Source: Macrostomum lignano (lineage: Eukaryota). From it: 64,000 nt of DNA. The notes beneath the pieces are model-generated. The model worked only from the letters and a program-made list of their open reading frames with translations. It had not been told where the DNA came from and made no database searches. A program made the translations under genes and the position numbers. The DNA lies in assembly GCA_002269645.1 (NCBI GenBank), contig NIVC01000762.1, positions 186,001-250,000 of the forward strand. The letters run 5' to 3'. This document shows, piece after piece, positions 25,311-64,000 of the stretch. Position 1 is the first letter of the stretch. Each line of letters starts with the position of its first letter.

Positions 25311-25552
25311 GCTTTGCAAGGTTTCATGAAGGTATTAACTTTTATTATAGAGGCTATGGTTTCTTAAGAAAAGCAACGAAAAAATGTTATTAACTGTACC
25401 ATGCATAGAGACTACTCCAGTGTATTTTATGACATCACTACTAGTACTCTGATGGAGATAGGCTAATTACCTAAATATATAAGACAAGCGTATAACTGGA
25501 ATGTTTCTGTTCTGACTATTAGTGCTTCTGGCAGTTAGTGTCAGAAGGCTTG

Positions 25553-32359: not shown

Positions 32360-32735
32360 CTAGTAGGGGTCCAGCGCGGCGCTCTGATATTCCAGCGGCC
32401 CAGGCTCGATTCCAATTGCAGTCAGCAGTAATCTAAATTAATCTGGGACTAAATTGGAATCTCGGCTTGGCTCTGTTCGTGCAATTAACGCCCTTAAGGC
32501 CTAACCCCTATGTCACAGTAAATTGTGCATGCCTAACAATAAATAAAGTTAGGGCAGCTGTACACTCCTGTGTGAGTGTGTGCCTGTGCGTATGACTGTG
32601 TACATATCCGCGCGCTTGTGTGCCTGCTCAGGGGAGTCGGCGGAATGGGCAGCAATGCCTCTCGCCGGTTGTGTGACAATGTCGCTTAAAGTGCGCCAGG
32701 GTGCACACAGCCCCTGCCTGCCTCTAACTAAAAAG
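32360..32735 (+). mobile_element. Dispersed repeat family 2, probably a SINE
   Basis: Homologous in inverted orientation to 62878-63185. B-box-like ggctcgattcc near the 5' end; 3' end tgcctctaactaaaa. Confidence 0.7.
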
Positions 32736-37851: not shown

Positions 37852-39750
37852 TCAATCCCAAATATCTAGACAGCTTTCAAAATCAACATCATAAGAGTTA
37901 AACATCGAATCCGAGCCACTGAAAGCGCCATCTGCACCCGATCCACCCTTCGAAGGTGTGGTTTTGCCGCACACTGTGCAAAGAACACGCGAACCATTGG
38001 AGACGCTGGGCGCAGTTGGAGACACGGCGGTGCAATGCGGGCAGGCAAAGTCAACTGAAGTTGAAATCTCCGACAATGTGGGTGACAAATCGCGACGATT
38101 GAAATTCAGCTTCGGTTTATTGTTTGACGAAAAAAAATCCAGTCGCATGGGACGCTGGGCGAGACCCGGGTTCAAAGATTTCGATGGTGCCACTAGAGGC
38201 GCAGATGTAGGTCGCTGCGCTTTGCCCACCTTACTGCTCATAGGGCCAGCCAGAAAGTCCGGCGCACCTACACGGTCCTTCTTCTTGTTGCCACGCATGG
38301 CGCTGGCCAGGGCCTCCTTGAGGTGCGACTCGCACAGACCCGCCTCGACCACCGGCCTCCCGCACTCCCCGTCCTCCAGACCGCCTCCAGACGTCTCCTT
38401 CTGCTCCTGGACGCTGCACCGACCTACAGCGCCCGCCACTCCGACAAGCTCCAGCTGAACGCCCCGCTCCAGCGCCGCCTGCCGAACCTTCTCCAACGGC
38501 CAGTCTCTGAACGTCTCCACGCACTCCGACCCGTGGTGGCAGTGGAGTCCCTTGTTCCCGCCGCAGCACTCCTGTCGAACAAACAGACTGCCGCAGTCGC
38601 TGCAGAACTCCGCCTTGCACTGCCTGCACGTCAGGTGAAGACAGCCGCCTCGAGACAGCTCGAACTGGAAGCCGCACTTTGGACACGAGCTGCCCCGACT
38701 CTCCAGGAACTGCGCCAGTCCGCGCTCGCTCAAGTCCGTCTGCTGACGCCACTCGCCGAACTGCTGGCAGCTCACGCCTCGGTGCCGCTCGTGCCACGCC
38801 TTGCCGCACTTCCTGCACGTCTCCTTGCCGCAGTGCGGGCACCGCACCTGCCTGTCGTGGTGCTCCGACACCTCGAAACCGTTCGAGCACCCGCTGCACC
38901 AGCAGAAGTTGTCCGTCAGCTTCAGTCGCCAGTCGCGCAGTCTCTCATCCAGCTTCTTCATCACTACGGGCTTCAGCTTGCCCGCCAGCAACCTCTGCAG
39001 CAGCGGAAAGTACTCGCACGACGTGTCCGTCAGAGCTCGGTCGTCCAGCTTGTCGCACACCGGACACGTCAGCACCGACACCGAGCTGTCGTGCATCAGG
39101 CGCACCTCGATCTGCTGGCACAGACAGTCGCTGCAGACCTCGCAGCCGCACAGGGGAACCTCGACCAGCTTCTTCTCGTCGATGCACACCGGGCACTCTT
39201 TGCTAGCAGTAGTTTCCGTTGGAGATGCTTTAGAGTTTCGAATAGAAATCGCTCTGAGCGGTCGAATTTGATCCCACTGCAGCACACCTTCAGTAGCCCT
39301 GTGAGTAGGGTAAAACGGCTCCAAACTCCTAGTGAAAATGTCATCCGCTTCTACAGCACCCGTGTCCTGCTCTTCTGCTAGGCGTCTTCGGAGACCCGAG
39401 GAGCTGCTTGTCTCGCTCATCCGTGTTTTTGAAAATCGCTGAAACATATCTCTGAAAGGTTCGGCTGCTGCATCCGTTTTGGGGTCTCGCAAGCTCCACG
39501 AATCACAGGCTGCATCGTCAAAACGTTGCCTGTGGTGCTGATTTTTACGAGACTTTGGCTTGGGTGCCCGTTCAAGATGCTGTGCTCTCTGCTGTCGCTG
39601 GTGCAGATCCAGAAGCTCCTCACAAGAGACTGACTTGGAACACACGCTGCAGATAATGCGAATTTTAGGATTGGAAGTGTCGCACGTAGCCGAGTTGATA
39701 AATGTGCAGTGCTGGCACTGCCACTCAATGTTTTGGCTAGCTGATGCCAT
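37852..39750 (-). CDS. RBR E3 ligase F (632 aa): NZF, RING1-IBR-RING2, truncated LDD, C-terminal zinc finger
   Basis: RING2 CPKCGFQFELSRGGCLHLTC keeps the catalytic Cys and His. FRDW and CESHLKEAL match the first part of the LDD. Start taken at MASASQ by comparison with paralogs. Confidence 0.9.
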   Translation of the reverse strand: MASASQNIEWQCQHCTFINSATCDTSNPKIRIICSVCSKSVSCEELLDLHQRQQRAQHLERAPKPKSRKNQHHRQRFDDAACDSWSLRDPKTDAAAEPFRDMFQRFSKTRMSETSSSSGLRRRLAEEQDTGAVEADDIFTRSLEPFYPTHRATEGVLQWDQIRPLRAISIRNSKASPTETTASKECPVCIDEKKLVEVPLCGCEVCSDCLCQQIEVRLMHDSSVSVLTCPVCDKLDDRALTDTSCEYFPLLQRLLAGKLKPVVMKKLDERLRDWRLKLTDNFCWCSGCSNGFEVSEHHDRQVRCPHCGKETCRKCGKAWHERHRGVSCQQFGEWRQQTDLSERGLAQFLESRGSSCPKCGFQFELSRGGCLHLTCRQCKAEFCSDCGSLFVRQECCGGNKGLHCHHGSECVETFRDWPLEKVRQAALERGVQLELVGVAGAVGRCSVQEQKETSGGGLEDGECGRPVVEAGLCESHLKEALASAMRGNKKKDRVGAPDFLAGPMSSKVGKAQRPTSAPLVAPSKSLNPGLAQRPMRLDFFSSNNKPKLNFNRRDLSPTLSEISTSVDFACPHCTAVSPTAPSVSNGSRVLCTVCGKTTPSKGGSGADGAFSGSDSMFNSYDVDFESCLDIWD

Positions 39751-41747: not shown

Positions 41748-43472
41748 TTACACCAAAACTTCTTTCTCTTTGCTACCCAACAGCGGTGGCACCATTTTTT
41801 TTAGCCGGTCGCGGTAAACTCTCATCTTCTCTCTTGCAGCAAAAGCAGGGTTGGAGGCGTTGACTTTCGGCAGGGCCAAACCAAACCTTCTGAACATCTC
41901 CAGCAGCTCATTCTCACTGGCAACATCTACTAAATCAAGCGCGTTTGCATTGATGAGCTGAATTAGATACTCACGGTAGTGCCTGTCGCATATACCCGGC
42001 TTGTTATGAGAAACTTTTTCGGTACAAGGATATATACCAATCAACTTTCGTTCTATCTTCAAATCAGGAAGCTCACAAGCTTTGTTAACTTTTGAGCATG
42101 CTTCGCTTACTTTAATCTTATTTCTCCTCAACAAATCAAGTAGAGTCGTCTGTTTTACTTGCTTCAAATAAAAGTAGCACTGGCGCTGGTGGTGCACATG
42201 AATTCCTTTAATTTGGCAGCCTTCGTGAGGTCTCAACTGAGGGCTTCGACAAAATGGACAGAATGAATGCCCACATCTGCAGTGAAACACAGGAACTCCA
42301 GATTTGGACACTCGTTGGTAGCAAAGAATGCAGACTGGGCAAACCAAATCAAAAGTCAGAAGCTCCATCATCTGATCGTGCAGGTTTGCGTCAGTAGGCG
42401 AGAAGCCTTGCTTTTGAGCAGCTATGTGCATTTCGTTATAATCTCCTTTTTGTTGAATACCTGCTGCATAATCCCGATAACTGCTGCAGCCCATCCGATA
42501 GTGATCAACCCAGAACCCGAAGCATTTCTTGCAGGCATTCCGTTTGCAAACTTTGCAGTAACTTTCGCACTGCCGAGTGTCCATTTTCGGTAGTCCACCA
42601 TTCCTATGAGGACAATAACCATTCGAAGTGTTTAATGGAACTGTCGAGGCATCTTTAGAGGCTTTTGATTTTGTCCCTTTCTTTCCTGCGGCTTCGACCA
42701 CTTCCCAACCTTCGTCGCTATTTTTGCTTGAATTTTCTTCAAGGTGCACCACTGCATACTCCACAGTGTCAGAGCCAAGCAAATCCGCCATTTCCATCAG
42801 CTGCATCCTCATGAAATCCCGACTGTCTTCATCATCGCACACATCCTTGCAGACAGGGCACTGAATTCTGCTGCTTTTCAGCTCAAGAAGAAATTTCCGA
42901 AAACACTCTGGACACATTTGGCACTCGCATGCTGCCATGGCAACAAGTTTGTGACGCGGTAAATCATTCGAACAGCGGCTGCACTTGCGACGCAATTGGC
43001 TCAGCAGAGCATCGTCTTCGAACGCTAGGACACCACACGACTCAATCGCAACTGCAAGGTCTGATTCGGAAAACTCGTTAAACTTGGGCATGCTTTTGAC
43101 AGCCAGAACTCTCTCTGCTACCCAGTCTTCCACTCTGAGCTGCAAAGCCAGGTTTTGAGCTCTATCGGACCATTCGATAGAATCGCTTCCTGCTGCTCCG
43201 ACTGCAGCACTGGCGGCTGATGTGGCTGCGGAGGTCAGCATGGACGCAGCAGCAGCGGCTTCACTGCGAGCGACTGCGCCTCCTTTAGTGGTTCCACCAC
43301 TGAGTTCGGTAGTCTGTGCGCAAGCAGAGCAAATTCCAAGCCCAGTTTCTGGCTGCGATGGAGCCGGGTTCACCAGCGTGCAGTGATTGCAGACCCAGCT
43401 ACCGTTGCTTTGAGAATTGTTTTCTTGGAAATTTTGAGAGGTTACATTTGAAGGAACATTTGTTGCATGATG
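41748..43472 (-). CDS. Gene G, 3' part: NZF, RING1, inactive C-type RING2, LDD-like; open frame behind an in-frame TGA
   Basis: Same frame as 43473-45467 with no further lesion; colinear with the C-terminal half of C; RING2 reads SGVPVFHC. Confidence 0.65.
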   Translation of the reverse strand, partial: HHATNVPSNVTSQNFQENNSQSNGSWVCNHCTLVNPAPSQPETGLGICSACAQTTELSGGTTKGGAVARSEAAAAASMLTSAATSAASAAVGAAGSDSIEWSDRAQNLALQLRVEDWVAERVLAVKSMPKFNEFSESDLAVAIESCGVLAFEDDALLSQLRRKCSRCSNDLPRHKLVAMAACECQMCPECFRKFLLELKSSRIQCPVCKDVCDDEDSRDFMRMQLMEMADLLGSDTVEYAVVHLEENSSKNSDEGWEVVEAAGKKGTKSKASKDASTVPLNTSNGYCPHRNGGLPKMDTRQCESYCKVCKRNACKKCFGFWVDHYRMGCSSYRDYAAGIQQKGDYNEMHIAAQKQGFSPTDANLHDQMMELLTFDLVCPVCILCYQRVSKSGVPVFHCRCGHSFCPFCRSPQLRPHEGCQIKGIHVHHQRQCYFYLKQVKQTTLLDLLRRNKIKVSEACSKVNKACELPDLKIERKLIGIYPCTEKVSHNKPGICDRHYREYLIQLINANALDLVDVASENELLEMFRRFGLALPKVNASNPAFAAREKMRVYRDRLKKMVPPLLGSKEKEVLV

Positions 43473-45467
43473 TCAATGTAGTTGCCGATTCTGTTCTTTC
43501 TTCTGTTGCTCTCTCAGCTGTTGCTCTCTCTGCTGTTGCTCTCTCTGCTGTTGCTCTCTCTGCTGTTGCTCTCTCTGCTGTTGCTCTCTCTGCTGTTGCT
43601 CTCTCTGCTGTTGCTCTCTCTGCTGTTGCTCTCTCTGCTGTTGCTCTCTCTGCTGTTTCTCTCTCAGCTGTCGCTCTCTCAGCTGTTGCTCTCTCAGCTG
43701 TTGCTCTCTCTGCTGTTGCTCTCTCTGCTGTTGCTCTCTCTGCTGTTGCTCTCTCTGATGTTGCTCTCTCTGCTGTTTCTCTCTCAGCTGTCGCTCTCTC
43801 AGCTGTTGCTCTCTCTGCTGTTGCTCTCTCTGCTGTTGCTCTCTCTGCTGCTGCTCTCTCTGCTGCTGCTCTCTCTGCTGTTCAGCCCGCTGTGGATTCA
43901 TCTGCTGCTCAAAAAAATCATTTGCTTTATCTTGACCTTCAATTTTACCTCGCTGAGTCAAGAGCAAAAACAAATTCTGCTGCTCTCTCAGCGTCTTCTT
44001 GTTGCCATGCATGGCGCTGGCCAGGGCCTCCTTGAGGTGCGACTCGCACAGACCCGACTCGACCACCGGCCTCCCGCACTCCCCGTCCTCCAAACCGCCT
44101 CCTGACGTCTCCTTCTGCTCCTGGACGCTGCACCGACCTACAGCGCCCGCCACTCCGACAAGCTCCAGCTGAACGCCCCGCTCCAGCGCCGCCTGCCGAA
44201 CCTTCTCCAACGGCCAGTCTCTGAACGTCTCCACGCACTCCGACCCGTGGTGGCAGTGGAGTCCCTTGTTCCCGCCGCAGCACTCCTGTCGAACAAACAG
44301 ACTGCCGCAGTCGCTGCAGAACTCCGCCTTGCACTGCCTGCACGTCAGGTGAAGACAGCCGCCTCGAGACAGCTCGAACTGGAAGCCGCACTTTGGACAC
44401 GAGCTGCCCCGACTCTCCAGGAACTGCGCCAGTCCGCGCTCGCTCAAGTCCGTCTGCTGACGCCACTCGCCGAACTGCTGGCAGCTCACGCCTCGGTGCC
44501 GCTCGTGCCACGCCTTGCCGCACTTCCTGCACGTCTCCTTGCCGCAGTGCGGGCACCGCACCTGCCTGTCGTGGTGCTCCGACACCTCGAAACCGTTCGA
44601 GCACCCGCTGCACCAGCAGAAGTTGTCCGTCAGCTTCAGTCGCCAGTCGCGCAGTCTCTCATCCAGCTTCTTCATCACTGCGGGCTTCAGCTGGCCCGCC
44701 AGCAACCTCTGCAGCAGCGGAAAGTACTCGCACGACGTGTCCGTCAGAGCTCGGTCGTCCAGCTTGTCGCACACCGGACACGTCAGCACCGACACCGAGC
44801 TGTCGTGCATCAGGCGCACCTCGATCTGCTGGCACAGACAGTCGCTGCAGACCTCGCAGTCGCACAGGGGAACCTCGACCAGCTTCTTGTCGTCGATGCA
44901 CACTGGGCACTCTTTGCTAGCAGTAGTTTCCATTGGAGCTGCTTTAGAGTTTCGAATAGAAATAGCTCTGAGCGGTCGAATTTGATCCCACTGCAGCACA
45001 CCTTCAGTAGCCCTGTGAGTAGGGTAAAACGGCTTCGAACTCCTAGTGAAAATGTCATTCGCTTCTACAGCACCTGGGTCCCGCTCTTCGCCTATGCATC
45101 TTCGAAGACCCAATGTGCTGCTTGTCTCGCTCATCCGGGTCCTCGAAAATCGCTGAGACATACTAATGCTCAAAGGTTCGGCTGCTGCATCCGTTTCGGC
45201 GTCTCGCAAACTCCACGAAGCACGGGATTCATCGTCAAAGCTTTGCCTGTGCTGTTGGTTTTTACGAGGCTTTGGCTTGGGTGCCCGTTCAAGATGCTGT
45301 GCTCTCTGTTGTCGCTGGTGCAGATCCAGAAGCTCCTCACAAGAGACTGACTTGGAACACACGCTGCAGATAATGCGACTTTTAGGATTAGAAGTGTCGC
45401 ATACAGACGAGTTAATAAATGTGCAGTGCTGGCACTGCCACTCAATGTTTTCACTAGCTGATGCCAT
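43473..45467 (-). CDS. Gene G, 5' part (664 aa): NZF, intact F-type RBR, truncated LDD, QQREQ repeat
   Basis: RBR nearly identical to F; ends in TGA at 43473-43475. Confidence 0.88.
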   Translation of the reverse strand: MASASENIEWQCQHCTFINSSVCDTSNPKSRIICSVCSKSVSCEELLDLHQRQQRAQHLERAPKPKPRKNQQHRQSFDDESRASWSLRDAETDAAAEPLSISMSQRFSRTRMSETSSTLGLRRCIGEERDPGAVEANDIFTRSSKPFYPTHRATEGVLQWDQIRPLRAISIRNSKAAPMETTASKECPVCIDDKKLVEVPLCDCEVCSDCLCQQIEVRLMHDSSVSVLTCPVCDKLDDRALTDTSCEYFPLLQRLLAGQLKPAVMKKLDERLRDWRLKLTDNFCWCSGCSNGFEVSEHHDRQVRCPHCGKETCRKCGKAWHERHRGVSCQQFGEWRQQTDLSERGLAQFLESRGSSCPKCGFQFELSRGGCLHLTCRQCKAEFCSDCGSLFVRQECCGGNKGLHCHHGSECVETFRDWPLEKVRQAALERGVQLELVGVAGAVGRCSVQEQKETSGGGLEDGECGRPVVESGLCESHLKEALASAMHGNKKTLREQQNLFLLLTQRGKIEGQDKANDFFEQQMNPQRAEQQREQQQREQQQREQQQREQQQREQQLRERQLREKQQREQHQREQQQREQQQREQQQREQQLREQQLRERQLREKQQREQQQREQQQREQQQREQQQREQQQREQQQREQQQREQQQREQQLREQQKKEQNRQLH

Positions 45468-47615: not shown

Positions 47616-50600
47616 TCACTTCACAAGTGGCTTCTGCTGAGCAATCAAAGCTCGCAGGGCAGCCACGTTGTTCTCGCCGACTCCTGAAAAGTCAATTCCT
47701 TCCCGTAGACAGGCTCCCCTGAGCTCGCCTTCGTCCATCACACTGACGGGATCCAGCTTTTGTTTGTTCACCAGCGATACAAGGTACTCAATGTAGTGCT
47801 TCTCGCACAGGTTCGCCTGGCCCGGTTTCACATCGACACCGCACGGCTCATCCTTCAAACCGTTTGCAACTTCCTTCTGCTCCATCACTTCGCATTTGTC
47901 AACTGGGTTCTCAGCTTCGCTCTCGAACTCCACCTTGTGTAAATTCAGCAGCCGCTGCAGCCGGTCCACTCCAAAGTCTCTAAGGTAAAAGAGACAGTCT
48001 CTCGGGTGTTTGCAACTCAGGCCTCTGCCGTGAATAATTGTATGCTCGCCGTCACAGTCTGCGCAGAATTTAAAGCGGCACATTCGGCAGGTAAAGTGCA
48101 GAGAACCACCCTTTGCTAAGGCGTACTGGAAGCGACAATTAGGACATTCAATGCCATTGGCTTGTAGAAAAAATCCAACACCTTTCTCCTGATATTCTGG
48201 ATCATTGTCCATCAGCCACTTCTCAAACTGGTCGCAGTCAATGCCTTCATGCTGATCTTTCCACGGCTTTTTGCACTCTTTGCAGGTAAAGGCCTCACAA
48301 TTAGGACATTGGAACTTTAAACCGATCATGATGTCTCCGAGAACCATTCCAAAGCCACAGCTGCTGCACCAGCGAAAGTTTGGATCTCGAAAAAGATTCC
48401 ACTCTGTGATCTTCTTCTCGACAAGATCAACAACGTTTTCATCAAATTTATATTCAGATTGTTTAAAGCCTTGTATCTGTTTGATCTGTGGCAGAAGAAT
48501 TCCGAAATGGCTTTCAAACTCCTCTATTTGATTTGCATTGGGTACTTGGCACATTGGGCAACAAAGATCTGTGACATGCCCGCCACCTGTCATAGCCGTT
48601 GCTACGAAGTTACGAAAGCACTCGTGGCACAACTCACACTGGCATGAAGCCATTGGTAATAACTTGTGCTTTGGAAACTTATCAAAACAGCAACTGCACT
48701 CGCACTGCAAGTAACTTTTCACGAAGTCAACATAATCGCACCTGTTATTGCTGCCCTTTGCAGCCTCTGCAAGGTCGTAAAGATCGCGGCCCTTAAACTC
48801 GCTGTTTTGCATAAGCTGAAAAAGTATTTTAGCATCGCTAATCTTTCTTAAGTCGAACTCTACCATCAGAGAGCGAAGGGAGGCCTCACTTTCATTCACT
48901 TTTTCATTTTCAGCTTGAATATTAGTTTTGAAATCACCGTCAAAAAGCTGTTTCTCTCTTTGCTTTTGCTCTCCCACACGTTGCTCTGTCCAACTGAGTT
49001 CGGTAGTCTGTGCGCAAGCAGAGCAAATTCCAAGCCTAGTTTCTGGCTGCGACGGAGCCGGGTTGACCAGCGTGCAGTGCTTGCAGACCCAGCTGCCATC
49101 ACGTTGAGATGTGTTTTTTTGGAAATTTGGAGAGGCTACTTTTGACGGAACATTTGTTGCATGATTTTCATGTAGTTGCCGATTCTGTTCTTTCTGCTGC
49201 TCTCTCAGCTGTCGCTCTCTCTCACGTTGCTCTCTCTGCTGGTGCTCTCTCTGGTGTTGCTCTCGCTCAAGTAGCTCTTTCTCGCGCTCTCTCTCCCATT
49301 GCTCTCTCTGCTGCTGCTGAAGGCTACTGAGATATTTTCTGTGCTGCTCATAAAGATCATTTGGCCTATCTTCACCTTCAAATTGACTCTGCACATTCAC
49401 ATCCAAAAAGAAATTCTCTTGCTGGTTCTGCTGCTGCTCTCTCAGCTTCTTCTTCTTGCCCCGCATGGCGCTGGCCAGGGCTTCCTTGAGGTGCGACTCG
49501 CACAGACCCGCCTCCATCACCGGCCTCCCGCACTCCGAGTCCTCCAGACCGCCTCCTGACGTCTCCTTCTGCTCCTGGACGCTGCACCGACCTCCAGCGC
49601 CCGCCACTCCGACAAGCTCCAGCTCAACGCCCCGATCCAGCGCCGTCTGCCGAACCTTCTCCAACGGCCAGTCTCTGAACGTCTCCACGCACTCCGACCC
49701 GTGGTGGCAGTGCAGTCCCTTGTTCCCGCCGCAGCACTCCTGTCGAACAAACAGACTGCCGCAGTCGCTGCAGAACTCTGCCTTGCACTGCCTGCACGTC
49801 AGGTGAAGACAGCCGCCTCGAGACAGCTCGAACTGGAAGCCGCACTTTGGACACGAGCTGCCCCGACTCTCCAGGAACTGCGCCAGTCCGCGCTCGCTCA
49901 AGTCCGTCTGCTGACGCCACTCGCCGAACTGCTGGCAGCTCACGCCTCGGTGCCGCTCGTGCCACGCCTTGCCGCACTTCCTGCACGTCTCCTTGCCGCA
50001 GTGCGGGCACCGCACCTGCCTGTCGTGGTGCTCCGACACCTCGAAACCGTTCGAGCACCCGCTGCACCAGCAGAAGTTGTCCGTCAGCTTCAGTCGCCAG
50101 TCGCGCAGTCTCTCATCCAGCTTCTTCATCACTGCGGGCTTCAGCTGGCCCGCCAGCAACCTCTGCAGCAGCGGAAACTCGCACGACGTGTCCGTCAGAG
50201 CTCGGTCGTCCAGCTTGTCGCACACCGGACACGTCAGCACCGACACCGAGCTGTCGTGCATCAGGCGCACCTCGATCTGCTGGCACAGACAGTCGCTGCA
50301 GACCTCGCAGCCGCACAGGGGAACCTCGACCAGCTTCTTGTCGTCGGTGCACACCGGGCACTCTTTGCTAACAGTAGTTTTCGTTGGAGCTGCTTTAGAG
50401 TTTCGAACAGAAATTGTTGTGAGTGACGATTTTTTAACTGGCCGATTTTGCTTATGATGCAGCATACCTCGAGTAGCACTTTGAGTAGGGTAAAACGGCT
50501 TCAAACTCCTAGTGAAAATGTCATCCGCTTCTACAGCGTCCGGGTCATGCTCTTCGCCTATGCGTCTTCGAAGACCCGAGGAGCTGCTTGTCTCGCTCAT

Positions 50601-53301: not shown

Positions 53302-55134
53302 TTACACCATAGCTTCTTCGTCTTCGCTAAGTGGCAACATTTCCTTCAGCCGTTCGCGGTAAATACTCGTTTTTTCTCTCGCAGCAGAAGCAGGGTAGGA
53401 GGCTTTGACTTTTGGCAGGGCCAAACCAAACCTTCTGAACATCTCCAGCAACTCATTCTCACTGGCAACATCCACCAAATCGAGTTTGTTTGCATTGATG
53501 AGCTGAATTAGACACTCACGGTAGTGCCTGTCGCATATACCTGGGTTTTTATAAGTAACTTTTTCGGCACAAGGACAGACTTTCAGCTTTCCGTCCATCT
53601 TCAAATCGGGAAGCTCACAACCTTTGCCAAACTTTGAGCATACGTCGCTCACTTTGACCTTATTTCTCCTCAGCAAATCAAGTAGAGTCGTCTGTTTTAC
53701 ATGCTTCAAATTAAAGAAGCACTGGCGATAGTGGTGCACATGAAGTCCTTTAATTTGGCAGTCTTCGTGAGGTCCAATCTGACGGCTTTGACAAAATGGA
53801 CAGAATGAATTTCTGCAACTACAGTGAAACACAAAAACGCCAGACTTGGACACACGCTGATAGCAATGACTACATTTTGGGCAAACCAAATGAAAAGTCA
53901 GAAGCTTCATCATCTGATCGTACAGCCTTTTGTCAGTAGACGAGTGACCTTGGTTCTGAGCAGCTATGTGCATTTTGTTATAATATTTTTGATGAATACC
54001 TTCTGCATGCTTCCGATAACTGCCGCAGTCCATCCGATGGTGAACAACCCAGAAGCCGAAGCATTTCTTGCAGACATCCTGTTTGCAAAGTTTGCAGTGA
54101 CTGTCGGATTGTCAAGTGCCCATTTTCGGTAGTCCAATATTTCCATGGGGACAATAACCATTCGAAGTAACAACTGGAACTGTCGAGACATGTTTTGAAG
54201 ATTTTGAGTTTTTTTTCCTTTCCTGTCTGGGGCTTCGACCACTTCCCAACCTTCGTCGATATTTTGGCTTGAATTACCTCCAAGCACAAGGACTTCAAGG
54301 CGTGCCACTGCATACTCCACAGTGTCAGAGCCAAGCACATCCTCCATTTCCATCAGCTGCATCCTCATGAAATCCAGACTGTCTTCATCGTCGCACGCCA
54401 CCTGGCAGACAGGGCACTGAATTCTGCTGCTTTTCAGATCAACAAGGAATTTCTCAAAGCACTCTGGACACATTTGGCACTCGCAAGCTGCCATGGCAAC
54501 AAGTTTGTGACGTGGCAACTCATTCGAACAGCGGCTGCACTTTCGAAGCAGTTGGCTCATCAGACGATCAGAGCATCGTCTTCGAACGCCAGCCCGCCAC
54601 ACGACTCAATCGCCACTGCGAGGTCCGATTCGGAAAAAAAGTTTAAACTTGGGCATACTTTTGACAACCAAAACTCTCTCTGCTACCCAGTCTTCCACTC
54701 TGAGATGCAAAGCCAGGTTTTGAGCTCTATCGGACCATTCGATAGAATCGCTTCCTGCCGCTCCGACTGCAGCACGGCGGCTGCTGTGGCTGCGGAGGTC
54801 AGCATGGACGCTGCAGCAGCGGCTTCACTGCGAGCGACTGCGCCTCCTTTAGTGGTTCCACCACTGAGTTCGGTAGTCTGTGCGCAAGCAGAGCAAATCC
54901 CAAGCCCAGTTTCTGGCTGCGATGGAGCCGGGTTCACCAGCGTGCAGTGATTGCAGACCCACCTGCCGTTGCTTTGAGAATTGTTTTCTTGGAAATTTTG
55001 AGAGGTTACATTTGAAGGAACATTTGTTGCATGATGTCAATGTAGTTGCCGATTCTGTTCTTGCTGTTGCTCTCTCTGCTGCTGCTCTCTTTGCTGTTGC
55101 TCACTCTGCTGCTGCTCACTCTGCTGCTGCTCAC

Positions 55135-55169
<35 letters not shown>

Positions 55170-56170
55170 CTCTCTCGCGTTGTTCTCTCTGCTGTTGCTC
55201 TTGCTGCTTTTTCTCTCTCTCACGTTGCTCTCTCTGCTGTTGCTCTCTCAGCTGTTGCTCTCTCTGCTGTTGCTCTCTCAGCTGTTGCTCTCTCTGCTGT
55301 TGCTCTCTTTTCTGCTGCTCTCTCTGCTGTTGCTCTCTCTGCTGTTGCTCTCTCTGCTGTTGCTCTCTCTGCTGCTGCTCTCTCTGCTGCTGCTCTTTCT
55401 GCTGTTGCTCTCTCTGCTGTTGCTCTCTCTGCTGTTTCTCTCTCTGCTTTCGCTCTCTCTCACGTTGCTCTCTCTGCTGTTTCTCTCTCTGTTTTTGTTC
55501 TTTCTGCTGTTTCTCTCTCTGCTGTTGCTCTCTCTGCAGCTGTTTTTCTCTCTGCTATTGTTCTTTCTGCTGTTGCTCTCTCTGCTTTCGCTCTCTCTCA
55601 CGTTGCTCTCTCTGCTGTTTCTCTCTGTTTTTGTTCTTTCTGCTGTTTCTCTCTCTGCTGTTGCTCTCTCTGCAGCTGTTTCTCTCTCTGCTTTTGTTCT
55701 TTCTGCTGTTGCTCTCTCTGCTTTCGCTCTCTCTCACGTTGCTCTCTATGCTTTTGCTCTCTCTGCTGTTGCTCTCTCTGCTTTCGCTCTCCTTCGTTGG
55801 CGGAGCCGTCCGTCCATGCCGTGATCCCGATCTCCAGGGCCGCTCTGGCTTGTTCTTCTGCTGCTGCTCTCTGCAAAAAATCGCTTCCTGCCGCTCCGAC
55901 TGCAGCACTGGCGGCTGCTGTGGCTGCGGAGGTCAGCATGGACGCTGCAGCAGCGGCTTCACTGTGAACGACTGCGCCTCCTTTAGTGGCGCTACCACTG
56001 AGTTTGGTAATGTATGCGCAAGCAGAGCAAATTACAAGCCCAGTTTTTTGCTGCGATGGAGCCGGGTTCACCAACGTGCAGTGATTGCAGATCCAGCTGC
56101 CTTTGCTTTGAGAATTGTTTTCTTGGAAATTTTGAGAGGTTACATTTGAAGGAACATTTGTTGCATGATG
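53302..56170 (-). pseudogene. Gene I, 3' part: duplicated NZF/QRE units and a decayed C-type RING1-pseudoRBR-LDD
   Basis: Versus C and G: 2-bp loss at about 55620, TGA at 55037-55039, 1-bp loss at about 54775, 8-bp insertion at about 54560, extra A at about 54205, nonsense TGA at 54112-54114. Confidence 0.85.
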
Positions 56171-58264
56171 TCAATGTAGTTGCCGATTCTGTTCTTGCTG
56201 TTGCTCTCTCTGCTGCTGCTCTCTTTGCTGTTGCTCTCTCTGCTGCTGCTCTCTTTGCTGTTGCTCTCTCTGCTGTTGCTCTCTCTGCTGTTTCTCTCTC
56301 TGCTTTCGCTCTCTCTCACGTTGCTCTCTCTGCTGTTTCTCTCTCTGTTTTTGTTCTTTCTGCTGTTTCTCTCTCTGCTGTTGCTCTCTCTGCAGCTGTT
56401 TCTCTCTCTGCTTTTGTTCTTTCTGCTGTTGCTCTCTCTGCTTTCGCTCTCTCTCACGTTGCTCTCTATGCTTTTGCTCTCTCTGCTGTTGCTCTCTCTG
56501 CTTTCGCTCTCTCTGCTTTCGCTCTCCTTCGTTGGCGGAGCCGTCCGTCCATGCCGTGATCCCGATCTCCAGGGCCGCTCTGGCTTGTTCTTCTGCTGCT
56601 GCTCTCTGCAAAAAATCGCTTCCTGCCGCTCCGACTGCAGCACTGGCGGCTGCTGTGGCTGCGGAGGTCAGCATGGACGCTGCAGCAGCGGCTTCACTGT
56701 GAACGACTGTGCCTCCTTTAGTGGCGCTACCACTGAGTTTGGTAATGTATGCGCATGCAGAGCAAATTACAAGCCCAGTTTTTTGCTGCGATGGAGCCGG
56801 GTTCACCAACGTGCAGTGATTGCAGATCCAGCTGCCTTTGCTTTGAGAATTGTTTTCTTGGAAATTTTGAGAGGTTACATTTGAAGGAACATTCGTTGCA
56901 TGATCTCCATGTAGTTGCCGATTCTGTTCTTGCTGTTGCTCTCTCTGCTGCTGCTCTCTCTGCTGTTGCTCACTCTGCTGCTGCTCACTCTGCTGCTGCT
57001 CACTCTGCTGCTGCTCTCTCTGCTGTTGCTCTCTTTGCTGTTGCTCTCTCTGCTGCTGCTCTCTCTCACGTTGCTCTCTCTGCTGCTGCTCTCTTTGCTG
57101 TTGCTCTCTCTGCTGCTGCTCTCTTTGCTGTTGCTCACTCTGCTGCTTCTCTCTCTGCTGCTGCTCTCTCTGCTGCTGCTCTCTTTGCAGTTTCTCTCTC
57201 TGTTGCTGCTCTCTCTGCGGTTGCTCTCTCTGCTGTTGCTCTCTCAGCTGGTCTCTCAGCTGTTCTTCTCTCTCCTGTTGCTCTCTCAGCTGGTCTTTCA
57301 GCTGTTCTTCTCTCTCCTGTTGCTCTCTCAGCTGGTCTTTCAGCTGTTCTTCTCTCTCCTGTTGCTCTCTCAGCTGGTCTCTCAGCTGTTCTTCTCTCTC
57401 CTGTTGCTCTCTCAGCTGGTCTTTCAGCTGTTCTTCTCTCTCCTGTTGCTCTCTCAGCTGGTCTTTCAGCTGTTCTTCTCTCTCCTGTTGCTCTCTCAGC
57501 TGGTCTCTCAGCTGTTCTTCTCTCTCCTGTTGCTCTCTCAGCTGGTCTTTCAGCTGTTCTTCTCTCTCCTGTTGCTCTCTCAGCTGGTCTCTCAGCTGTT
57601 CTTCTCTCTCCTGTTGCTCTCTCAGCTGGTCTCTCAGCTGTTCTTCTCTCTCCTGTTCCTCTCTCTGGTGCTGGTCGCTCTGTTGCTGCTCCAACATCTG
57701 CAGCAGTCTCGCCGCCTCATCATTACCTAGCTGAGACTCCAGCTCGTACACAAGAATCATGGTCGTGTTTCGAGCTACATGGTCTCCAGACCAGGCCACT
57801 CCACACACCGGACACTCCAGCTGCCCTGGCATTCCGGACAGGAAGCTGCAGAAACAGCCACAGCACAGCTCGCACTCGCACGTCGCCATGTGAAACAGCT
57901 TGTGACGCGGCATCTGCTTTGAGCACTTGCAACACTGGCTTCTCAAGTGCGCTAACAGAGCTACCACATCATCGCAAGCCTTCCCACAAGACTGGATGGA
58001 GTCAATGAGGTCAGTATCGGAGAAGTCCTTGAACTCCCTAAGCTGCTTCACTTCCTGGAGTCGCTCGGTCAGCCAGGTGTCGCAGCGACGCTGGGCCTGA
58101 GGCGGCGGCGGCAGCACCTCGACTCGGTGATTCTCAACGCTGTGCCAGTTGGTGTGGCAGGACTCGCAGATCAGTTGGAAGCCGCAGCCGGCCTCCAGGC
58201 ACCGGATTGAGGCGCCTGGGCGGCCGCAGATGAGGCAGCGCTCGGCGAGCACTCGGTGAGCCAT
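56171..58264 (-). CDS. Gene I, 5' part (697 aa): variant B-box, helical segment, RING, 14-aa and QQREQ repeats, NZF
   Basis: N-terminus paralogous to protein A. TTTCAG acceptor at about 58305. Ends at the same TGA context as G. Confidence 0.75.
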   Translation of the reverse strand: MAHRVLAERCLICGRPGASIRCLEAGCGFQLICESCHTNWHSVENHRVEVLPPPPQAQRRCDTWLTERLQEVKQLREFKDFSDTDLIDSIQSCGKACDDVVALLAHLRSQCCKCSKQMPRHKLFHMATCECELCCGCFCSFLSGMPGQLECPVCGVAWSGDHVARNTTMILVYELESQLGNDEAARLLQMLEQQQSDQHQREEQEREEQLRDQLREQQEREEQLRDQLREQQEREEQLKDQLREQQEREEQLRDQLREQQEREEQLKDQLREQQEREEQLKDQLREQQEREEQLRDQLREQQEREEQLKDQLREQQEREEQLKDQLREQQEREEQLRDQLREQQQREQPQREQQQREKLQREQQQREQQQREKQQSEQQQREQQQREQQQREQQQREQREREQQQREQQQREQQQREQQQSEQQQSEQQQSEQQQREQQQREQQQEQNRQLHGDHATNVPSNVTSQNFQENNSQSKGSWICNHCTLVNPAPSQQKTGLVICSACAYITKLSGSATKGGTVVHSEAAAAASMLTSAATAAASAAVGAAGSDFLQRAAAEEQARAALEIGITAWTDGSANEGERKQRERKQREQQQREQKHREQRERERKQREQQQKEQKQREKQLQREQQQREKQQKEQKQREKQQREQRERERKQREKQQREQQQREQQQREQQQREQQQREQQQREQQQEQNRQLH

Positions 58265-59599
58265 GCGTTGCACAACCAAGTTTGCTTGTTGGTCAGGAGC
58301 GCTGCTGAAATTGAAAAAGGTTAGGAGCTTTGTACTCAATCGAGAGCAACTGTGGATTGACAAGTTTGAGTAATCTAGCTACGAGAGCATAAACTAAAGA
58401 GAAACAAAGTGATCTCTAGAGGGTTTTTTCGAGAAATATTCAGGTAGGGTGTTGATTTCTAGGCGATATGAAGAATTAATAAGTAAATAATAAATATTAA
58501 AGTCAATAAATATTTCAACGCATTTAGCACTTTGAGATGAATTGTCGAGTTTATTTGGCAACGAAAAAGAACAAAGTTTTGGTATTCCCACTGGGGAAAC
58601 CAAAGTCAGCTGTTTACCCTAAAGGCTAAGGAGCAATTTAAACCATCTGCAATACAAAATCATCTCATTCAGTATGATACGGTAAGTGCTGTAGTTGTAA
58701 ACCAGAAAAGTGCTAAAAAATCTACAAATGCCAATTAGACTACAAACTCACTAATCATTAAAGTTCTGCCTAAGCTCGCCTAGCCTCAACACCCAGCCCT
58801 AGCACAGTGGCGCAGGTCACGTCCTCCGTATTATCTGAGAGTTGCACTACTGTATTCGTGCCTGTCCATGCTTTTAACCTGTTAATGTGCATTGATTGTT
58901 TTCTACCTTTACCAAAACTATTGATTTTTCACGACCCTTTCATTACGATTTAGTTTTTTTAAAAACTGAGTTTTGATACCGCATCACACAGTGAACCATA
59001 ATTTGAAGTTGAGAAAAGAACAAAAACAAAAACGTTTCGTACCTTATAAATTAACACTTCAGCAAAACGCTTTAACAGCAAAACATTAAAATCTGGAGTA
59101 TCTTAATAATGAAAAACAAAGACTATATGGATACAGCACAGCTATCTTTGTCTTGAATCATACATTTAAATTTAAGGTAAATATCACGTTTATAAAATAT
59201 AATACCATTGTATAAAATCACAGAGAATATTTTGGTATATTCTGTGTTGAAAAACGGAATAATTGAACTTTTTGTTTACAAAAACAACTCAGCATTGAAT
59301 CACTCAAATTTGGTTGGAACAAATCCATCACATTTCTCAATGCAGTGTTGGAAGCCCTGTACTCGACAGGAGTTCTAGTCGAGTCCTGCGTAGACTGTAG
59401 GCCTTCCCTAGATTTCGATCTGAAAGGGTGAAGTTTTTCGCGCTAAGAAATATTGTCTTACTCTACATGACACAATTAAATAAAACTTCTATGGTGTAAT
59501 CTATTGTCCGCCCTACTCGTCAAGTTGCTATACAGCAACAATCAATGAAAATGCATAATCAAACAAAAGCTGAGGATACGACCAGCCAATAATAGGAAG

Positions 59600-60041
59600 C
59601 AGTGGTGTACACCGCAAAACACTGAAAAATGATTTTAACCCATTGTTCCACCAAGCAAGCAAGGCCCTGCTTGAACTCATCCGCAGGGACATCAGGGCGA
59701 TGACCATGGCCCTCTTGAGTAATGGTTGTTTTTCCAAGCACCGCTACCTCCAGAGAGCCCATTTTGCCTCTCCGGTGTTCAGAATGCGGACCACTTCATT
59801 TGTGAATGCCAAGCCTTTACTCAGGACAGGCTCACCAACTTCGGCCCAAACCCAGAGCTTTTTCACGTTTTCAGGACAGGAGAATCTCTGCCAGCTCGTC
59901 CGCTACCTAAGGGCTAGCGGGCGAGCGACCATCCACCTTCCGGACTCTCCGGAGGCGGGAACTGAAGCTCTAGGGCGACGACGCCTCCCCGCTGTATCCA
60001 GATGCCCGAAACCCCCCTGAAGCTAAGTCAAGTCAAGTAAG
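59600..60041 (+). mobile_element. Degenerate 3' end of a non-LTR retrotransposon
   Basis: Frameshifted fragments LIRRDIRAMTMALL..H / ADHFICECQAF..DRL..FG / LVRYLRASGR resemble the C-terminal zinc-finger region of LINE ORF2, followed by an (AAGTC)n-like tail. Confidence 0.55.
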
Positions 60042-60592
60042 ATACTATACCCTCTAATAGACCTGCTCAGAGATAGCTAACCGAACTACTCTGATTTTAA
60101 CATTTAAAGAATAAATCATCCCCCTCCATACACCAGACCGAACTACTGGTTCGCCCAGACAGCAGACCTTTAGAGCGATTTCAAAATCATCGAAAGCATC
60201 TTACTTGAAGCCTTCCCCTTGTATCAACATCTTACTTTGCAAGTTAACATCAATGTGATTAAAACCATTGATTACATCAGACTGTAGGTAAACCCCCCTT
60301 GCGTGATCGCATCAACAGGAAAAGTCAGTCAGTCGAATCCAACGCCTCGGTTTTTTGGTTCGAATACTCGTAATAGAAATAAAATCATAAACAGAGCCAC
60401 AGTAGTTAGAGTCCCAAACTCTAATCCAAACAAACAGAAACTCGAACTGCCATTCAGTTGAACCAATAAAAATTCACCTCAGTAAAGTTATCCAACTTGT
60501 TATTAAATAAAAAAAACAAATCTGCTTCGAGTCTCAATATCTTGTCTGAATAGACGATTTCAACTGAAACCTAACCAGTCATTGCAACAAAA

Positions 60593-60982
60593 CTAACCTG
60601 CATCCACGGCGCCATCAGTTGCTGCTTGATCGCGAACCTCCACCCTGTACGACCGGCCCATTGTTATATTGCCAAAGCCAAATTTTAACAGATGAACTCC
60701 CGGCATTTTCGGAGTAAAACTGCAGAGGTATTTCACTTTGCCTTCGGAGGCTTCAATTCTGAATCGAACTGGCACTTGAGCACCGTCACTTTCAACGCCT
60801 TCCGGTACGAGACGGAAAAATGGTTCACGTCTATCAACACCTTTGGTGTCCGTTAAAATAAACTTTGCCTCTTTGCCAACAGTGGCCACAGTCCAGTCCT
60901 TGCCACCGATGGACAGGTGGTTGCGTGGCTTTCTGCGGCTTCCAGGATTAGTCTTCTGACTGGAACCGGCGCCAGTAGCACC
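60593..60982 (-). CDS. Gene J exon 2: filamin-type Ig-like domain
   Basis: ATVGKEAKFIL...CSFTPKMPGVHLLKF...YRVEV fits the filamin repeat pattern. Acceptor tatccag|G at 60984-60983. Confidence 0.75.
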   Translation of the reverse strand, partial: GATGAGSSQKTNPGSRRKPRNHLSIGGKDWTVATVGKEAKFILTDTKGVDRREPFFRLVPEGVESDGAQVPVRFRIEASEGKVKYLCSFTPKMPGVHLLKFGFGNITMGRSYRVEVRDQAATDGAVDAG

Positions 60983-61068
60983 CTGGATAGGGGAATTTAT
61001 TCGTCAAGACGTTAGCGACATCTCTTTACTACGTGCAAAGACAAAATATACCTTCTAGAATAGCTTAC

Positions 61069-62178
61069 TGAGGTTTGCTTTCGCCTTGAAGATGCGACGT
61101 TAGCAACGCCTACACGGGGCTTCTTGTTGTCGCCACGCATGGCGCTGGCCAGGGCCTCTTTGAGGTGCGACTCGCACAGACCCGCCTCGACCACCGGCCT
61201 TCCGCACTTCCCGTCCTCCAGACCGCCTCCTGACGTCTCCTTCTGCTCCTGGACGCTGCACCGACCTCCAGCGCCCGCCACTCCGACAAGCTCCAGCTGA
61301 ACGCCCCGCTCCAGCGCCGTCTGCCGAACCTTCTCCAACGGCCAGTCTCTGAACGTCTCCACGCACTCCGACCCGTGGTGGCAGTGCAGTCCCTTGTTCC
61401 CGCCGCAGCACTCCTGTCGAACAAACAGACTGCCGCAGTCGCTGCAGAACTCCGCCTTGCACTGCCTGCACGTCAGGTGAAGACAGCCGCCTCGAGACAG
61501 CTCGAACTGGAAGCCGCACTTTGGACACGAGCTGCCCCGACTCTCCAGGAACTGCGCCAGTCCGCGCTCGCTCAAGTCCGTCTGCTGACGCCACTCGCCG
61601 AACTGCTGGCAGCTCACGCCTCGGTGCCGCTCGTGCCACGCCTTGCCGCACTTCCTGCACGTCTCCTTGCCGCAGTGCGGGCACCGCACCTGCCTGTCGT
61701 GGTGCTCCGACACCTCGAAACCGTTCGAGCACCCGCTGCACCAGCAGAAGTTGTCCGTCAGCTTCAGTCGCCAGTCGCGCAGTCTCTCATCCAGCTTCTT
61801 CATCACTGCGGGCTTCAGCTGGCCCGCCAGCAGCCTCCGAAGCAGCGGAAAGTACTCGCACGAAGTGTCCGTCAGAGCTCGGTCGTCCAGCTCGTCGCAC
61901 ACCGGACACGTCAGCACCGACACCGAGCTGTCGTTCATCAGGCGCACCTCGATCTGCTGGCACAGACAGTCGCTGCAGACCTCGCAGCCGCACAGGGGAA
62001 CTTCGACCAGCTTCTTCTCGTCGGTGCACACCGGGCACTCTGCTGATGTCTGCAGCTCTGAGAGGTCAGTGGACTTTCCGCACACTGAGCAGATCAGCCT
62101 TCTGTGCAGTTGGCGACCCTGTGCTCCATCATTGATGAAGGTACAGTGCGGACACTGCCACTGCGATCGGCGTGGCAT
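61069..62178 (-). CDS. Gene J exon 1: NZF, intact F-type RBR, truncated LDD (499 aa if spliced to exon 2)
   Basis: RBR nearly identical to F, G and H. Donor TCA|GTAAGC at 61068 gives an 86-nt phase-0 intron. TTTCAG acceptor about 20 nt before the ATG. Confidence 0.88.
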
Positions 62179-62877
62179 GTTAGATTGTTCAATCCAACTG
62201 AAATGAATTTTAAGAAACAATGACTAGCCATTTAGAATAGAACCGGGAGTTTTAAAGCTCCTAAGCCTTTTCATACTTACGCTAAGCTCAAACTTTGTCG
62301 CTAAAAGAAGTGGCTGTGCTTTGAAGTAAAAAAAAGAGCAAAGTAGAAGACTCTGAAATGTTGCTCGAAAAAATAACCGATATATTTTTAGACAAACAGG
62401 CACTTTTGTAATAACACATCAGCTGATAAATAGATCAGCACGAAGCGTGTAACACACAAAGTGTCAATATCATTCAAGCAGTTTTATCAGGACCAAAATG
62501 AAGGGTTAAATAACTAGAAATGAGCACATTGTGACAAATACGATTGCCTCCAGTCATTATACTGTAATTGAATTATAGTCAATCATGCCATTAACCAACT
62601 GCCATTATCATTTGCTAATATAGAAAACTTTAAGTATAATTATTGCATGGCTCAGTATGTCAACAGTACAACCAGCAACATTGAGACATCAACGCTGAGA
62701 CCAAAAAAGTGAAAAAGCAAATGATTAAAACGAAAATACTATAAATTTGCACACCTGCGACAAAGACAAAAAGTCGCACAAGTCTTCATGAAACATGAAA
62801 TGCTGCATCAGGTCTTCGATTTTGCACTAATAGCTGGTGAAAAACCACAAAAACTTTAGCATGATCCAAAGCAGCGT

Positions 62878-63185
62878 TTTAGTTAGAGGCAGCCAGGGGC
62901 TGCGTGCACCAGCTGGCGCACTTTAAGCGACATTGTCACACAACCGGCGAGAGGCATTACTGCCCATTCCGCCGACTCCCCTGAGCAGGCACACAAGCGC
63001 GCAGATACGTACGCAGTCATACGCACAGGCACATGTACACATGTACACTTCACTGTGCCTTGGGGGTTGGCACTCAAGGCCGTTAATTGCACAAGCAGAG
63101 CCAAGCCGAGATTCCAATTCAGCCCCAAATTAATGTGACTGCACTTGGAATCGAGCCTGGGCCACTGAGCTACGGGTCCCCTCTA
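62878..63185 (-). mobile_element. Dispersed repeat family 2, probably a SINE
   Basis: Inverted homolog of 32360-32735. Confidence 0.7.
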
Positions 63186-63690: not shown

Positions 63691-64000
63691 TTAATTCTGT
63701 TGTTGATAGTGGTAAGATTTTAGATTCTGTTGAGTCGCATTTATTGGCTGAAACGGGCTCGTGAACTGCTGCATTCTTGAGTTCATGCTCTGCATTGGCG
63801 GTACTGGTGAGTTCATGCTCTGCATTGGCGGTACTGGTGAGTTCATGCTCTGCATTGGCGGTACTGGTGAGTTCATGCTCTGCATTGGCGGTACTGGTGA
63901 GTTCATGCTCTGCATTGGCGGTACTGGTGAGTTCATGCTCTGCATTGGCGGTACTGGTGAGTTCATGCTCTGCATTGGCTGCATTGGCTGCATTGAGTTC
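63691..64000 (-). repeat. 30-bp tandem repeat reading MQSMNSPVPP; possibly the 3' end of a gene running off the window
   Basis: About 6 perfect units in an open frame ending in TAA at 63691; no domain evidence. Confidence 0.6.

Follow-up and report, generated by a model that had tools for sequence, protein, structure and literature searches.

Introduction

Human HOIP (RNF31) and Drosophila LUBEL (CG11321), ligases for Met1-linked ubiquitin chains, have a RING1-IBR-RING2 (RBR) core followed by an LDD, with an NZF-type zinc finger N-terminal of the RBR. A single filamin-type immunoglobulin (Ig) domain C-terminal to the catalytic part characterizes a different set of E3 ubiquitin ligases, namely TRIM2, TRIM3, TRIM71/LIN-41 and TRIM45. 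Here we describe a gene of the flatworm Macrostomum lignano in which a HOIP-like ligase appears to be joined to a filamin-type domain. It is located on the minus strand of a stretch of 64,000 nucleotides, positions 186,001 to 250,000 of contig NIVC01000762.1 in assembly Mlig_3_7, to which the analysed sequence is 100% identical; this whole stretch is referred to below as the window, and all coordinates are positions within it. We conclude that this is probably a real, transcribed chimeric gene. Its product would be a "mini-HOIP" (RING1-IBR-RING2 with an NZF-like finger before it and a shortened LDD after it) that continues into a basic linker, one filamin-type Ig repeat of divergent sequence and a short tail.

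In HOIP, mutation of the active-site residues (C885 and H887) and of the residues that contact the acceptor ubiquitin (R935 and D936) abolishes linear chain formation (PMC7246992). On its own, the HOIP RBR-LDD is active and specific for linear chains, needing neither HOIL-1L nor SHARPIN, and the LDD is a domain found only in HOIP (PMC3463842). The flatworm protein differs from HOIP in length (~525 aa as opposed to 1072 aa), in having no PUB, UBA or long N-terminal region, in an LDD that is ~55 residues shorter, in the deletion of the four-residue spacer between HOIP C911 and C916, and in the addition of the C-terminal filamin-type Ig domain. Furthermore, HOIP is a single-copy gene, whereas the flatworm gene is one of many tandem paralogues.

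The TRIM ligases are built as RING-B-box-coiled-coil proteins and have no catalytic cysteine, whereas the flatworm ligase is an RBR enzyme with a thioester step. The B-box, coiled-coil and NHL regions gave no Pfam family match in the flatworm protein, and there is no sign that the TRIM and flatworm fusions share a common descent. The Dictyostelium HECT-filamin protein HfnA likewise combines a catalytic-cysteine ligase with a filamin domain, but its catalytic domain is of the HECT type, its filamin domain is N-terminal, and it comes from an unrelated lineage (PMC5666861). HfnA shows that filamin repeats had previously been recruited to thioester-forming E3s. Our literature search on HOIP or RBR proteins together with filamin returned nothing relevant except HfnA (PMC5666861); no description of a filamin domain on an RBR was found, nor any paper on the fused gene model. 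As to gene number, the flatworm cluster resembles the Caenorhabditis ARI1 expansion (PMC6288150), which is also a recent, clustered, single-lineage expansion of one RBR subfamily. It differs in being HOIP-like and not Ariadne, in its homogenised cassette with differing ends, and in that some copies are without the catalytic Cys.

Exons and Splice Junctions

As read from the sequence, the frame of the ligase starts with an ATG at 62178-62176. All features described in the following are on the minus strand unless indicated otherwise. Coding exon 1 (61069..62178) provides 370 residues, comprising the NZF-like finger and the RING1-IBR-RING2-LDD region; its frame closes on TCA at 61071-61069 and is directly followed by the donor GTAAGC, with the GT at 61068-61067. 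The acceptor, CCCCTATCCAG|G, is pyrimidine-rich and has its AG at 60984-60983, so that exon 2 begins at 60982. Intron 1 (60983..61068; GTAAGC...CCAG) is 86 nt long and in phase 0. It contains a branch-like CTAAC ~27 nt 5' of the acceptor, and its GC content is 38%, compared with 51-64% in the flanking exons. Near the junction there are 44 stop-free, in-frame GT/AG combinations, the proposed pair being much closer to the consensus than any other. When intron 1 is left unspliced, the exon 1 frame meets a stop 19 codons past the donor, at 61012. In the exon 2 frame, in turn, a stop lies 8 codons 5' of the acceptor, and the first Met of exon 2 is residue 83, inside the domain. As both frames are closed and exon 2 has no earlier ATG, the N-terminal half of the domain can be translated only after splicing.

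The junction agrees with deposited gene models. PAA77153.1 (BOX15_Mlig017259g1, 5'-partial) is encoded by 62064..59337 of the window and shows the identical junction, RRKQTS|GATGAG. The same junction is present in UniProt A0A1I8HUB4, which derives from a second assembly and is 97% identical, and A0A1I8H820 has the proposed acceptor. The first-pass annotation, made from the DNA alone, had proposed an 86-nt phase-0 intron between a GTAAGC donor and a TATCCAG acceptor, and this intron is borne out both by the sequence and by the junction in PAA77153.1 and A0A1I8HUB4. At least three copies or alleles have an uninterrupted open reading frame (ORF). The N-terminus of exon 1, MPRRSQWQCPHC, is the same in gene model P0006 and near-identical in P0003. 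The fused model is thus already in GenBank and UniProt, in neither of which it is annotated as containing a filamin domain. For Mlig_3_7, the gene models were built from RNA-seq with STAR, StringTie and TACO, together with a de novo transcriptome and TransDecoder, and not ab initio (PMC5730564); because they are transcript-derived, the exon 1/exon 2 junction has indirect RNA support. A search for expression data did not find Mlig017259 in paper texts or in the supplements of PMC5816591.

Coding exon 2 (60598..60982) encodes the filamin-type Ig domain, preceded by a linker that is basic and of low complexity. Read in phase 0 from 60982, it is open for 129 codons and, with intron 2 retained, ends at the TAG at 60595..60593. 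The first-pass annotation had taken 60593 as the end of the gene. We rejected it as the true end: the TAG overlaps a second donor, G|GTTAGT, and the deposited model splices past it to a third exon. In that model, intron 2 (59420..60597; 1178 nt, GTTAGT...TTTCAG, phase 1) leads to coding exon 3 (59337..59419), which encodes the tail (D)RNLGKAYSLRRTRLELLSSTGLPTLH and a TGA at 59339..59337 and is an exact match to PAA77153.1. Exon 3 of the deposited model supplies a 27-residue tail, DRNLGKAYSLRRTRLELLSSTGLPTLH, and this tail exon is conserved in two further copies, A0A1I8HUB4 and A0A1I8J8R7. The filamin-type domain is complete whether or not intron 2 is spliced and is therefore present in both forms.

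Within intron 2, at ~59640-60020 on the plus strand, there is an ORF fragment with a HFICECQAFTQDR-type motif that by eye resembles the C-terminal part of ORF2 of a non-LTR (long terminal repeat) retrotransposon. At the other end of the gene, 19 nt upstream of the ATG, a TTTCAG (62197..62202; AG at 62199-62198) is a possible acceptor to judge from its sequence. It could serve as a cis-splice site or as a spliced-leader trans-splice site, and splicing at it would eliminate an ATG at 62231 that lies upstream and out of frame. Trans-splicing affects approximately 39% of M. lignano genes (PMC5730564).

Catalytic Core

Residues 47-354 of the spliced protein align to the structure of the RBR-LDD of human RNF31/HOIP (5EDV) with E 6e-53. 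Two Pfam families score above their cut-offs in this region, PF01485 for the IBR domain (61627..61785, aa 132-184; 38.4 bits) and PF22191 (IBR_1) for RING2 (61417..61536, aa 215-254; 42.3 bits). Alignment to 5EDV and 4LJP pairs Cys232 (61485..61483), which lies in GGCLH, with HOIP C885, which lies in GGCMH, and His234 with H887 (4LJP numbering). The protein consequently has the RING1-IBR-RING2 arrangement, the catalytic cysteine of RING2 and an end-to-end alignment to the HOIP RBR.

The truncated LDD (61117..61416, aa 255-354) keeps the Cys/His residues of the second finger. With the HOIP-specific LDD profile PF18091 it scores 29.7 bits (cut-off 23), the coverage being just positions 26-71 of 92, and in the alignment its Arg277/Asp278 (in FRDW) correspond to the acceptor-ubiquitin residues R935/D936 of HOIP. 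A HOIP-type RBR had also been the first-pass assignment, and the 5EDV match and the above-cut-off PF18091 score agree with it. In two paralogues in the window, at 33543-35141 and 47619-48731, the LDD is full-length (PF18091 positions 1-92).

N-terminal to the RBR, an NZF/RanBP2-like zinc finger (62074..62160, aa 7-35) was recognized by eye from the motif W-x-C-x2-C-T-F-x-N ... C-x2-C, with a long second loop. The corresponding Pfam match, PF00641, is partial and sub-threshold (13.5 bits, cut-off 27). This is the only NZF-like finger, and PUB and UBA domains gave no Pfam match in the protein. Without PUB and UBA, the protein is HOIP-like in its catalytic part only and is not a LUBAC-type HOIP orthologue.

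The Filamin-Type Exon

Exon 2 very probably encodes a divergent filamin-type Ig repeat (60629..60919, aa 392-488 of the spliced protein). The evidence comes from phmmer and hhalign comparisons and from an AlphaFold 2 (AF2) model examined with Foldseek; the Pfam match is sub-threshold and is considered in the Discussion. An exhaustive phmmer search of 1.84 billion representatives produced 17 matches at E<=1e-3. Twelve of these are verified filamin-repeat proteins, recognized by 5-23 Pfam repeats, by CH domains or by being named filamin at NCBI; the other five comprise a paralogue fragment, a spurious match and three unchecked entries. The spurious match, P0008 (E 8.5e-16), is a bacterial-type protein of 12 near-identical repeats that belongs to no Pfam family and has only a GFGN-like stretch in common with the exon.

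When compared with the repeats of filamin rods (FLNA/B/C and invertebrate filamins), the exon matches individual repeats over its whole length with 20-30% identity. The best individual repeat matches lie ~315 residues from the C-terminus of the abalone and amphioxus filamins, which by position would make the best-matching repeat number 22 of 24-repeat filamins. A MAFFT alignment with filamin repeats extends from end to end, and the G, F, P and G positions that hardly vary within the family are retained. So are two motifs, Y-x-C-x-F-T-P-x2-P-G-x-H and G-R-S-Y-R-V-E-V, for which the family patterns are Y-x-C-x-[FY]-T-P-x2-P-G-x-H and G-[RS]-[SP]-[YF]-x-V-x-V. Unlike the repeats of filamins, the flatworm repeat is single and isolated, and it is not accompanied by CH actin-binding domains. 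It also has an insertion in its middle, RLVPEGVESDGA, and GRSY in place of GSPF in the last strand.

Using hhalign, the three known copies of the exon matched 19 filamin repeats with 98.1% probability (E 9e-14). An alignment-guided AF2 model reached a pLDDT of 81.5 and a pTM of 0.71. Its best matches in the PDB according to Foldseek, with TM scores of 0.6-0.7, were repeat 10 of FLNA and FLNB, the filamin domains of LIN-41 and TRIM3 (4umg, 6fq3 and 7o0b), and repeat 24 of FLNA and FLNC. The top eight matches are all filamin-type domains; other Ig-like domains also appear in the list. The filamin exon occurs once in the window, within which there is neither a second filamin-like segment nor a donor, and no close donor gene for the repeat was found.

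A Homogenised Cassette and Its Breakpoint

The window contains at least eight HOIP-like RBR-LDD units in tandem, all on the minus strand and mostly as intronless ORFs. In the filamin-tailed gene, the catalytic part coincides with a homogenised cassette of ~930 bp (61109..62041, aa 47 to ~356) that has sharp ends and a GC content at third codon positions (GC3) of 0.82. This cassette is 97.2-97.7% identical at the DNA level among four genes (62041..61109, 39199..38267, 44913..43991 and 50364..49445). Outside it, the filamin-tailed gene has no DNA similarity to the other cassette genes, and the flanks of the cassette in those genes are coding sequences that are unrelated or far more diverged. DNA homology to the paralogues stops at 61109-61119, ~40 nt before the donor, leaving a unique 3' tail of exon 1 of ~14 codons (61069..61108). 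At the same breakpoint GC3 falls from 0.82 to 0.39-0.46, the lower values being those of the last 14 exon 1 codons, exon 2 and exon 3. The first-pass annotation had suggested a newly recruited substrate- or cytoskeleton-binding module. The breakpoint at ~61110 in DNA homology and GC3 speaks for the recruitment, whereas the binding role is pure conjecture.

The cassette pattern looks like gene conversion, possibly GC-biased. P0004 (829 aa), the product of the upstream neighbour, shares 45-55% identity with the filamin-tailed protein in residues 1-160 and 88-100% in residues 161-320, a mosaic of the kind typical for gene conversion. A protein encoded on another contig, P0003 (BOX15_Mlig019423g2), has the N-terminus of the filamin-tailed gene (MPxxSQWQCPHC..., 88-95%) and a C-terminal NZF tail that is 97% identical to that of the gene at 37855-39852. 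This composition could be a sign of mosaic exchange between members of the array, or of assembly collapse.

Discussion

Several of our observations weigh against a real and functional chimeric gene, and they are presented here together with the alternatives on which they bear. The alternative that survives best, though we consider it rather unlikely, is that the gene is a young chimeric by-product without a selected function: unequal crossing-over or gene conversion, in a turbulent tandem array and a recently duplicated genome, would have put the cassette in front of 3' exons that belonged to a different gene, and the result would be transcribed and drifting, its filamin tail serving no useful purpose. 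The position of the breakpoint, ~40 nt before the donor, and the sharp change in composition at this point fit such an event, as does the large extent of duplicated blocks, which make up 180-312 Mb of the genome (PMC5730564). The LDD is truncated. The alignment with HOIP stops at residue ~1017, and HOIP residues 1018-1072 have no counterpart; with these last ~55 residues of the LDD missing, linear-chain specificity and even folding are uncertain. Several neighbours are without the catalytic Cys, which indicates that the family tolerates decay, and between copies the filamin exon shows about twice the protein-level difference of exon 1. The spliced protein, used as a homology query, matches only proteins of M. 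lignano, and word-indexed searches with the whole protein, exon 2 and an alignment of five paralogues found no relatives outside this species. The ratio of nonsynonymous to synonymous substitution rates (dN/dS) among the cassette copies is 0.40-0.67, based on few differences and moderately below 1. Such values could be expected of a by-product, but being less than 1 they also count against it. Also against a by-product, at least three copies or alleles have preserved the ORF, the two introns and the tail exon, and the filamin hallmark positions as well as the catalytic residues are all retained.

It is very unlikely, in our estimate, that exon 2 encodes a generic Ig-like (E-set) beta-sandwich, or no domain at all, and that the filamin label is an over-interpretation. 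The Pfam Filamin family (PF00630) scores 17.6 bits (E 0.007) with exon 2 alone and 14.5 bits with the whole protein, below the cut-off of 26.9 bits, and a sequence search of the PDB with exon 2 gave filamin-A at only E 0.012. The Pfam threshold had been named beforehand as a point on which the filamin-like repeat of the first-pass annotation could fall. The score failed to reach it, and the filamin call therefore rests on the more sensitive evidence, in which the homology is supported by phmmer, hhalign and the model. This evidence has weaknesses of its own. The best single-repeat score in the phmmer search is just 21 bits, over query residues 24-116, and scores summed over repeat proteins can mislead, as they did for P0008. 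A single-sequence AlphaFold model of exon 2 had a pLDDT of 43 and was too poor for use. The alignment for the AF2 model, on which the structural comparison depends, was seeded with filamin repeats and the hhalign templates were picked from the query's own matches, so that both lines of evidence are partly circular. Other Ig-like domains in the Foldseek list would suit a generic fold as well, but its top eight matches are all filamin-type. Moreover, Filamin is the sole Pfam family matched by exon 2, the exhaustive search yielded filamins almost exclusively, and the match is full length and includes the family motifs.

The mapping of the RNA-seq data used for the annotation (SRP082513, SRR2682326) permitted multi-mapping (PMC5730564), and the transcript might thus derive from a near-identical copy. 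Copy-specific variants, such as Ile or Thr in KF[I/T]LTD, distinguish this copy from its near-twin. That exon 2 comes from another transcript altogether, e.g. from a downstream gene of a polycistronic unit resolved through spliced-leader trans-splicing, the ligase ending at the read-through stop at 61012, is hard to credit: the multi-gene precursors that form ~7% of M. lignano transcriptional units and the trans-splicing of many genes (PMC5730564), the 5'-partial GenBank model, the visible merging of several array genes in UniProt model P0006 and the 44 alternative in-frame GT-AG pairs could all be cited for such an annotation artefact, but the closed frame 8 codons upstream of exon 2 and the first Met at residue 83 leave no independent start for a domain-bearing protein, the splice sites and the branch motif come close to the consensus, and the junction is common to the models of two assemblies and the acceptor to a third model.

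Taking the locus as a real chimeric gene, a mechanism can be proposed from what is known of HOIP. RING1 would bind the ubiquitin-charged E2, the ubiquitin would be handed to Cys232 of RING2, and Arg277/Asp278 of the LDD would hold the acceptor ubiquitin for chain extension. The chains would probably be Met1-linked, provided that the shortened LDD still folds. Having no PUB or UBA regions, the enzyme should be constitutively active, like the isolated HOIP RBR-LDD. By analogy with filamin and the TRIM-NHL proteins, the filamin-type domain is most likely a targeting or self-association module, which might bind a beta-strand peptide of a partner or pair in the manner of filamin repeat 24. That the enzyme is active, which chains it makes and what the filamin domain does are inferred from these analogies.

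With respect to origin, the gene would consist of a catalytic cassette, homogenised by gene conversion and common to the neighbouring paralogues, set into a gene-specific frame. The 3' part of this frame, which runs from the last ~14 exon 1 codons through the intron and the filamin exon to the tail exon, would have a different history. Should the gene be a mere drifting chimera, it would still illustrate cleanly how exons can be captured at a breakpoint in a tandem array.

A bolder reading, to which we give little credence, is that the cluster constitutes a diversifying system, one cassette being kept near-identical by gene conversion and combined with interchangeable N- and C-terminal recognition parts. 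These parts may include the NZF fingers, the filamin Ig domain, the Q/E-rich and PMQSMNS repeats, and catalytically dead decoys. If so, the cluster would supply a set of HOIP-like ligases that need no partners and are aimed at different targets, for example in defence or reproduction, and the filamin-tailed gene would be one specificity variant within it. The tandem array, with its constant cassette and variable ends, is a more interesting lead than the filamin fusion.

HOIP is normally single-copy and partner-dependent, and to our knowledge it is the sole known maker of Met1-linked ubiquitin chains. If M. lignano has many short, probably partner-independent HOIP-like genes, these would show that Met1 chemistry can be re-aimed by domain shuffling. 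The fusion would extend the recruitment of filamin domains to a third class of E3, after RING (TRIM-NHL) and HECT (HfnA), and the shortened LDD is a natural variant in which one could ask what segments of the domain linear specificity requires. RNA interference and transgenesis exist for M. lignano.

Other Features of the Window

Besides the filamin-tailed gene, HOIP-like units are found at 33543-35141, which has the full-length LDD, at 37855-39852, at 43476-45467, and at 41751-43373 and 53305-54033, in both of which the catalytic Cys is replaced. A long HOIP-like ORF at 47619-50933 (1105 codons) encodes two complete RBR-LDD units. The first contains the homogenised cassette, the second has a full LDD and a Cys-to-Ser replacement, and an NZF finger and a Q/E-rich spacer lie between them. 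The upstream neighbour encoding P0004 is represented by its tail only (63691-64000), as it runs off the end of the window; this tail consists of PMQSMNS(M/PVP) peptide repeats in a long tandem array.

Replacement of the catalytic RING2 Cys was seen in four paralogues (47619-48731, 41751-43373, 53305-54033 and 27375-30407), one of which has GGSLH at this site and three SGVPV or SGVFV. All retain the LDD, which by Pfam is full-length in three of the four. These paralogues may be pseudo-ligases or decoys.

Four long ORFs, at 18149-21295, 23193-25319, 27375-30407 and 56174-58363, start with a B-box-like finger (C-x2-C...C-x2-C-D-x2-WH-x-H), followed by RING1-like segments, NZF fingers and long REQQQ or RERDSGQP repeats. 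Pfam detected nothing in them but a sub-threshold RanBP finger in two. From their sequences they appear to be distant members of the cluster.

Two kinds of repeated DNA were also observed. A block of ~0.7-1 kb at 57621..56340 recurs with 84-92% identity at 55791..54746, 43883..43181 and 29556..28838, between the ligase genes, and probably corresponds to segments coding for Q/E-rich repeats. In the spacer upstream of the filamin-tailed gene, a segment of ~300 bp (63167..62877) has an inverted copy, 77% identical, at 32393..32733, which may be a dispersed repeat.

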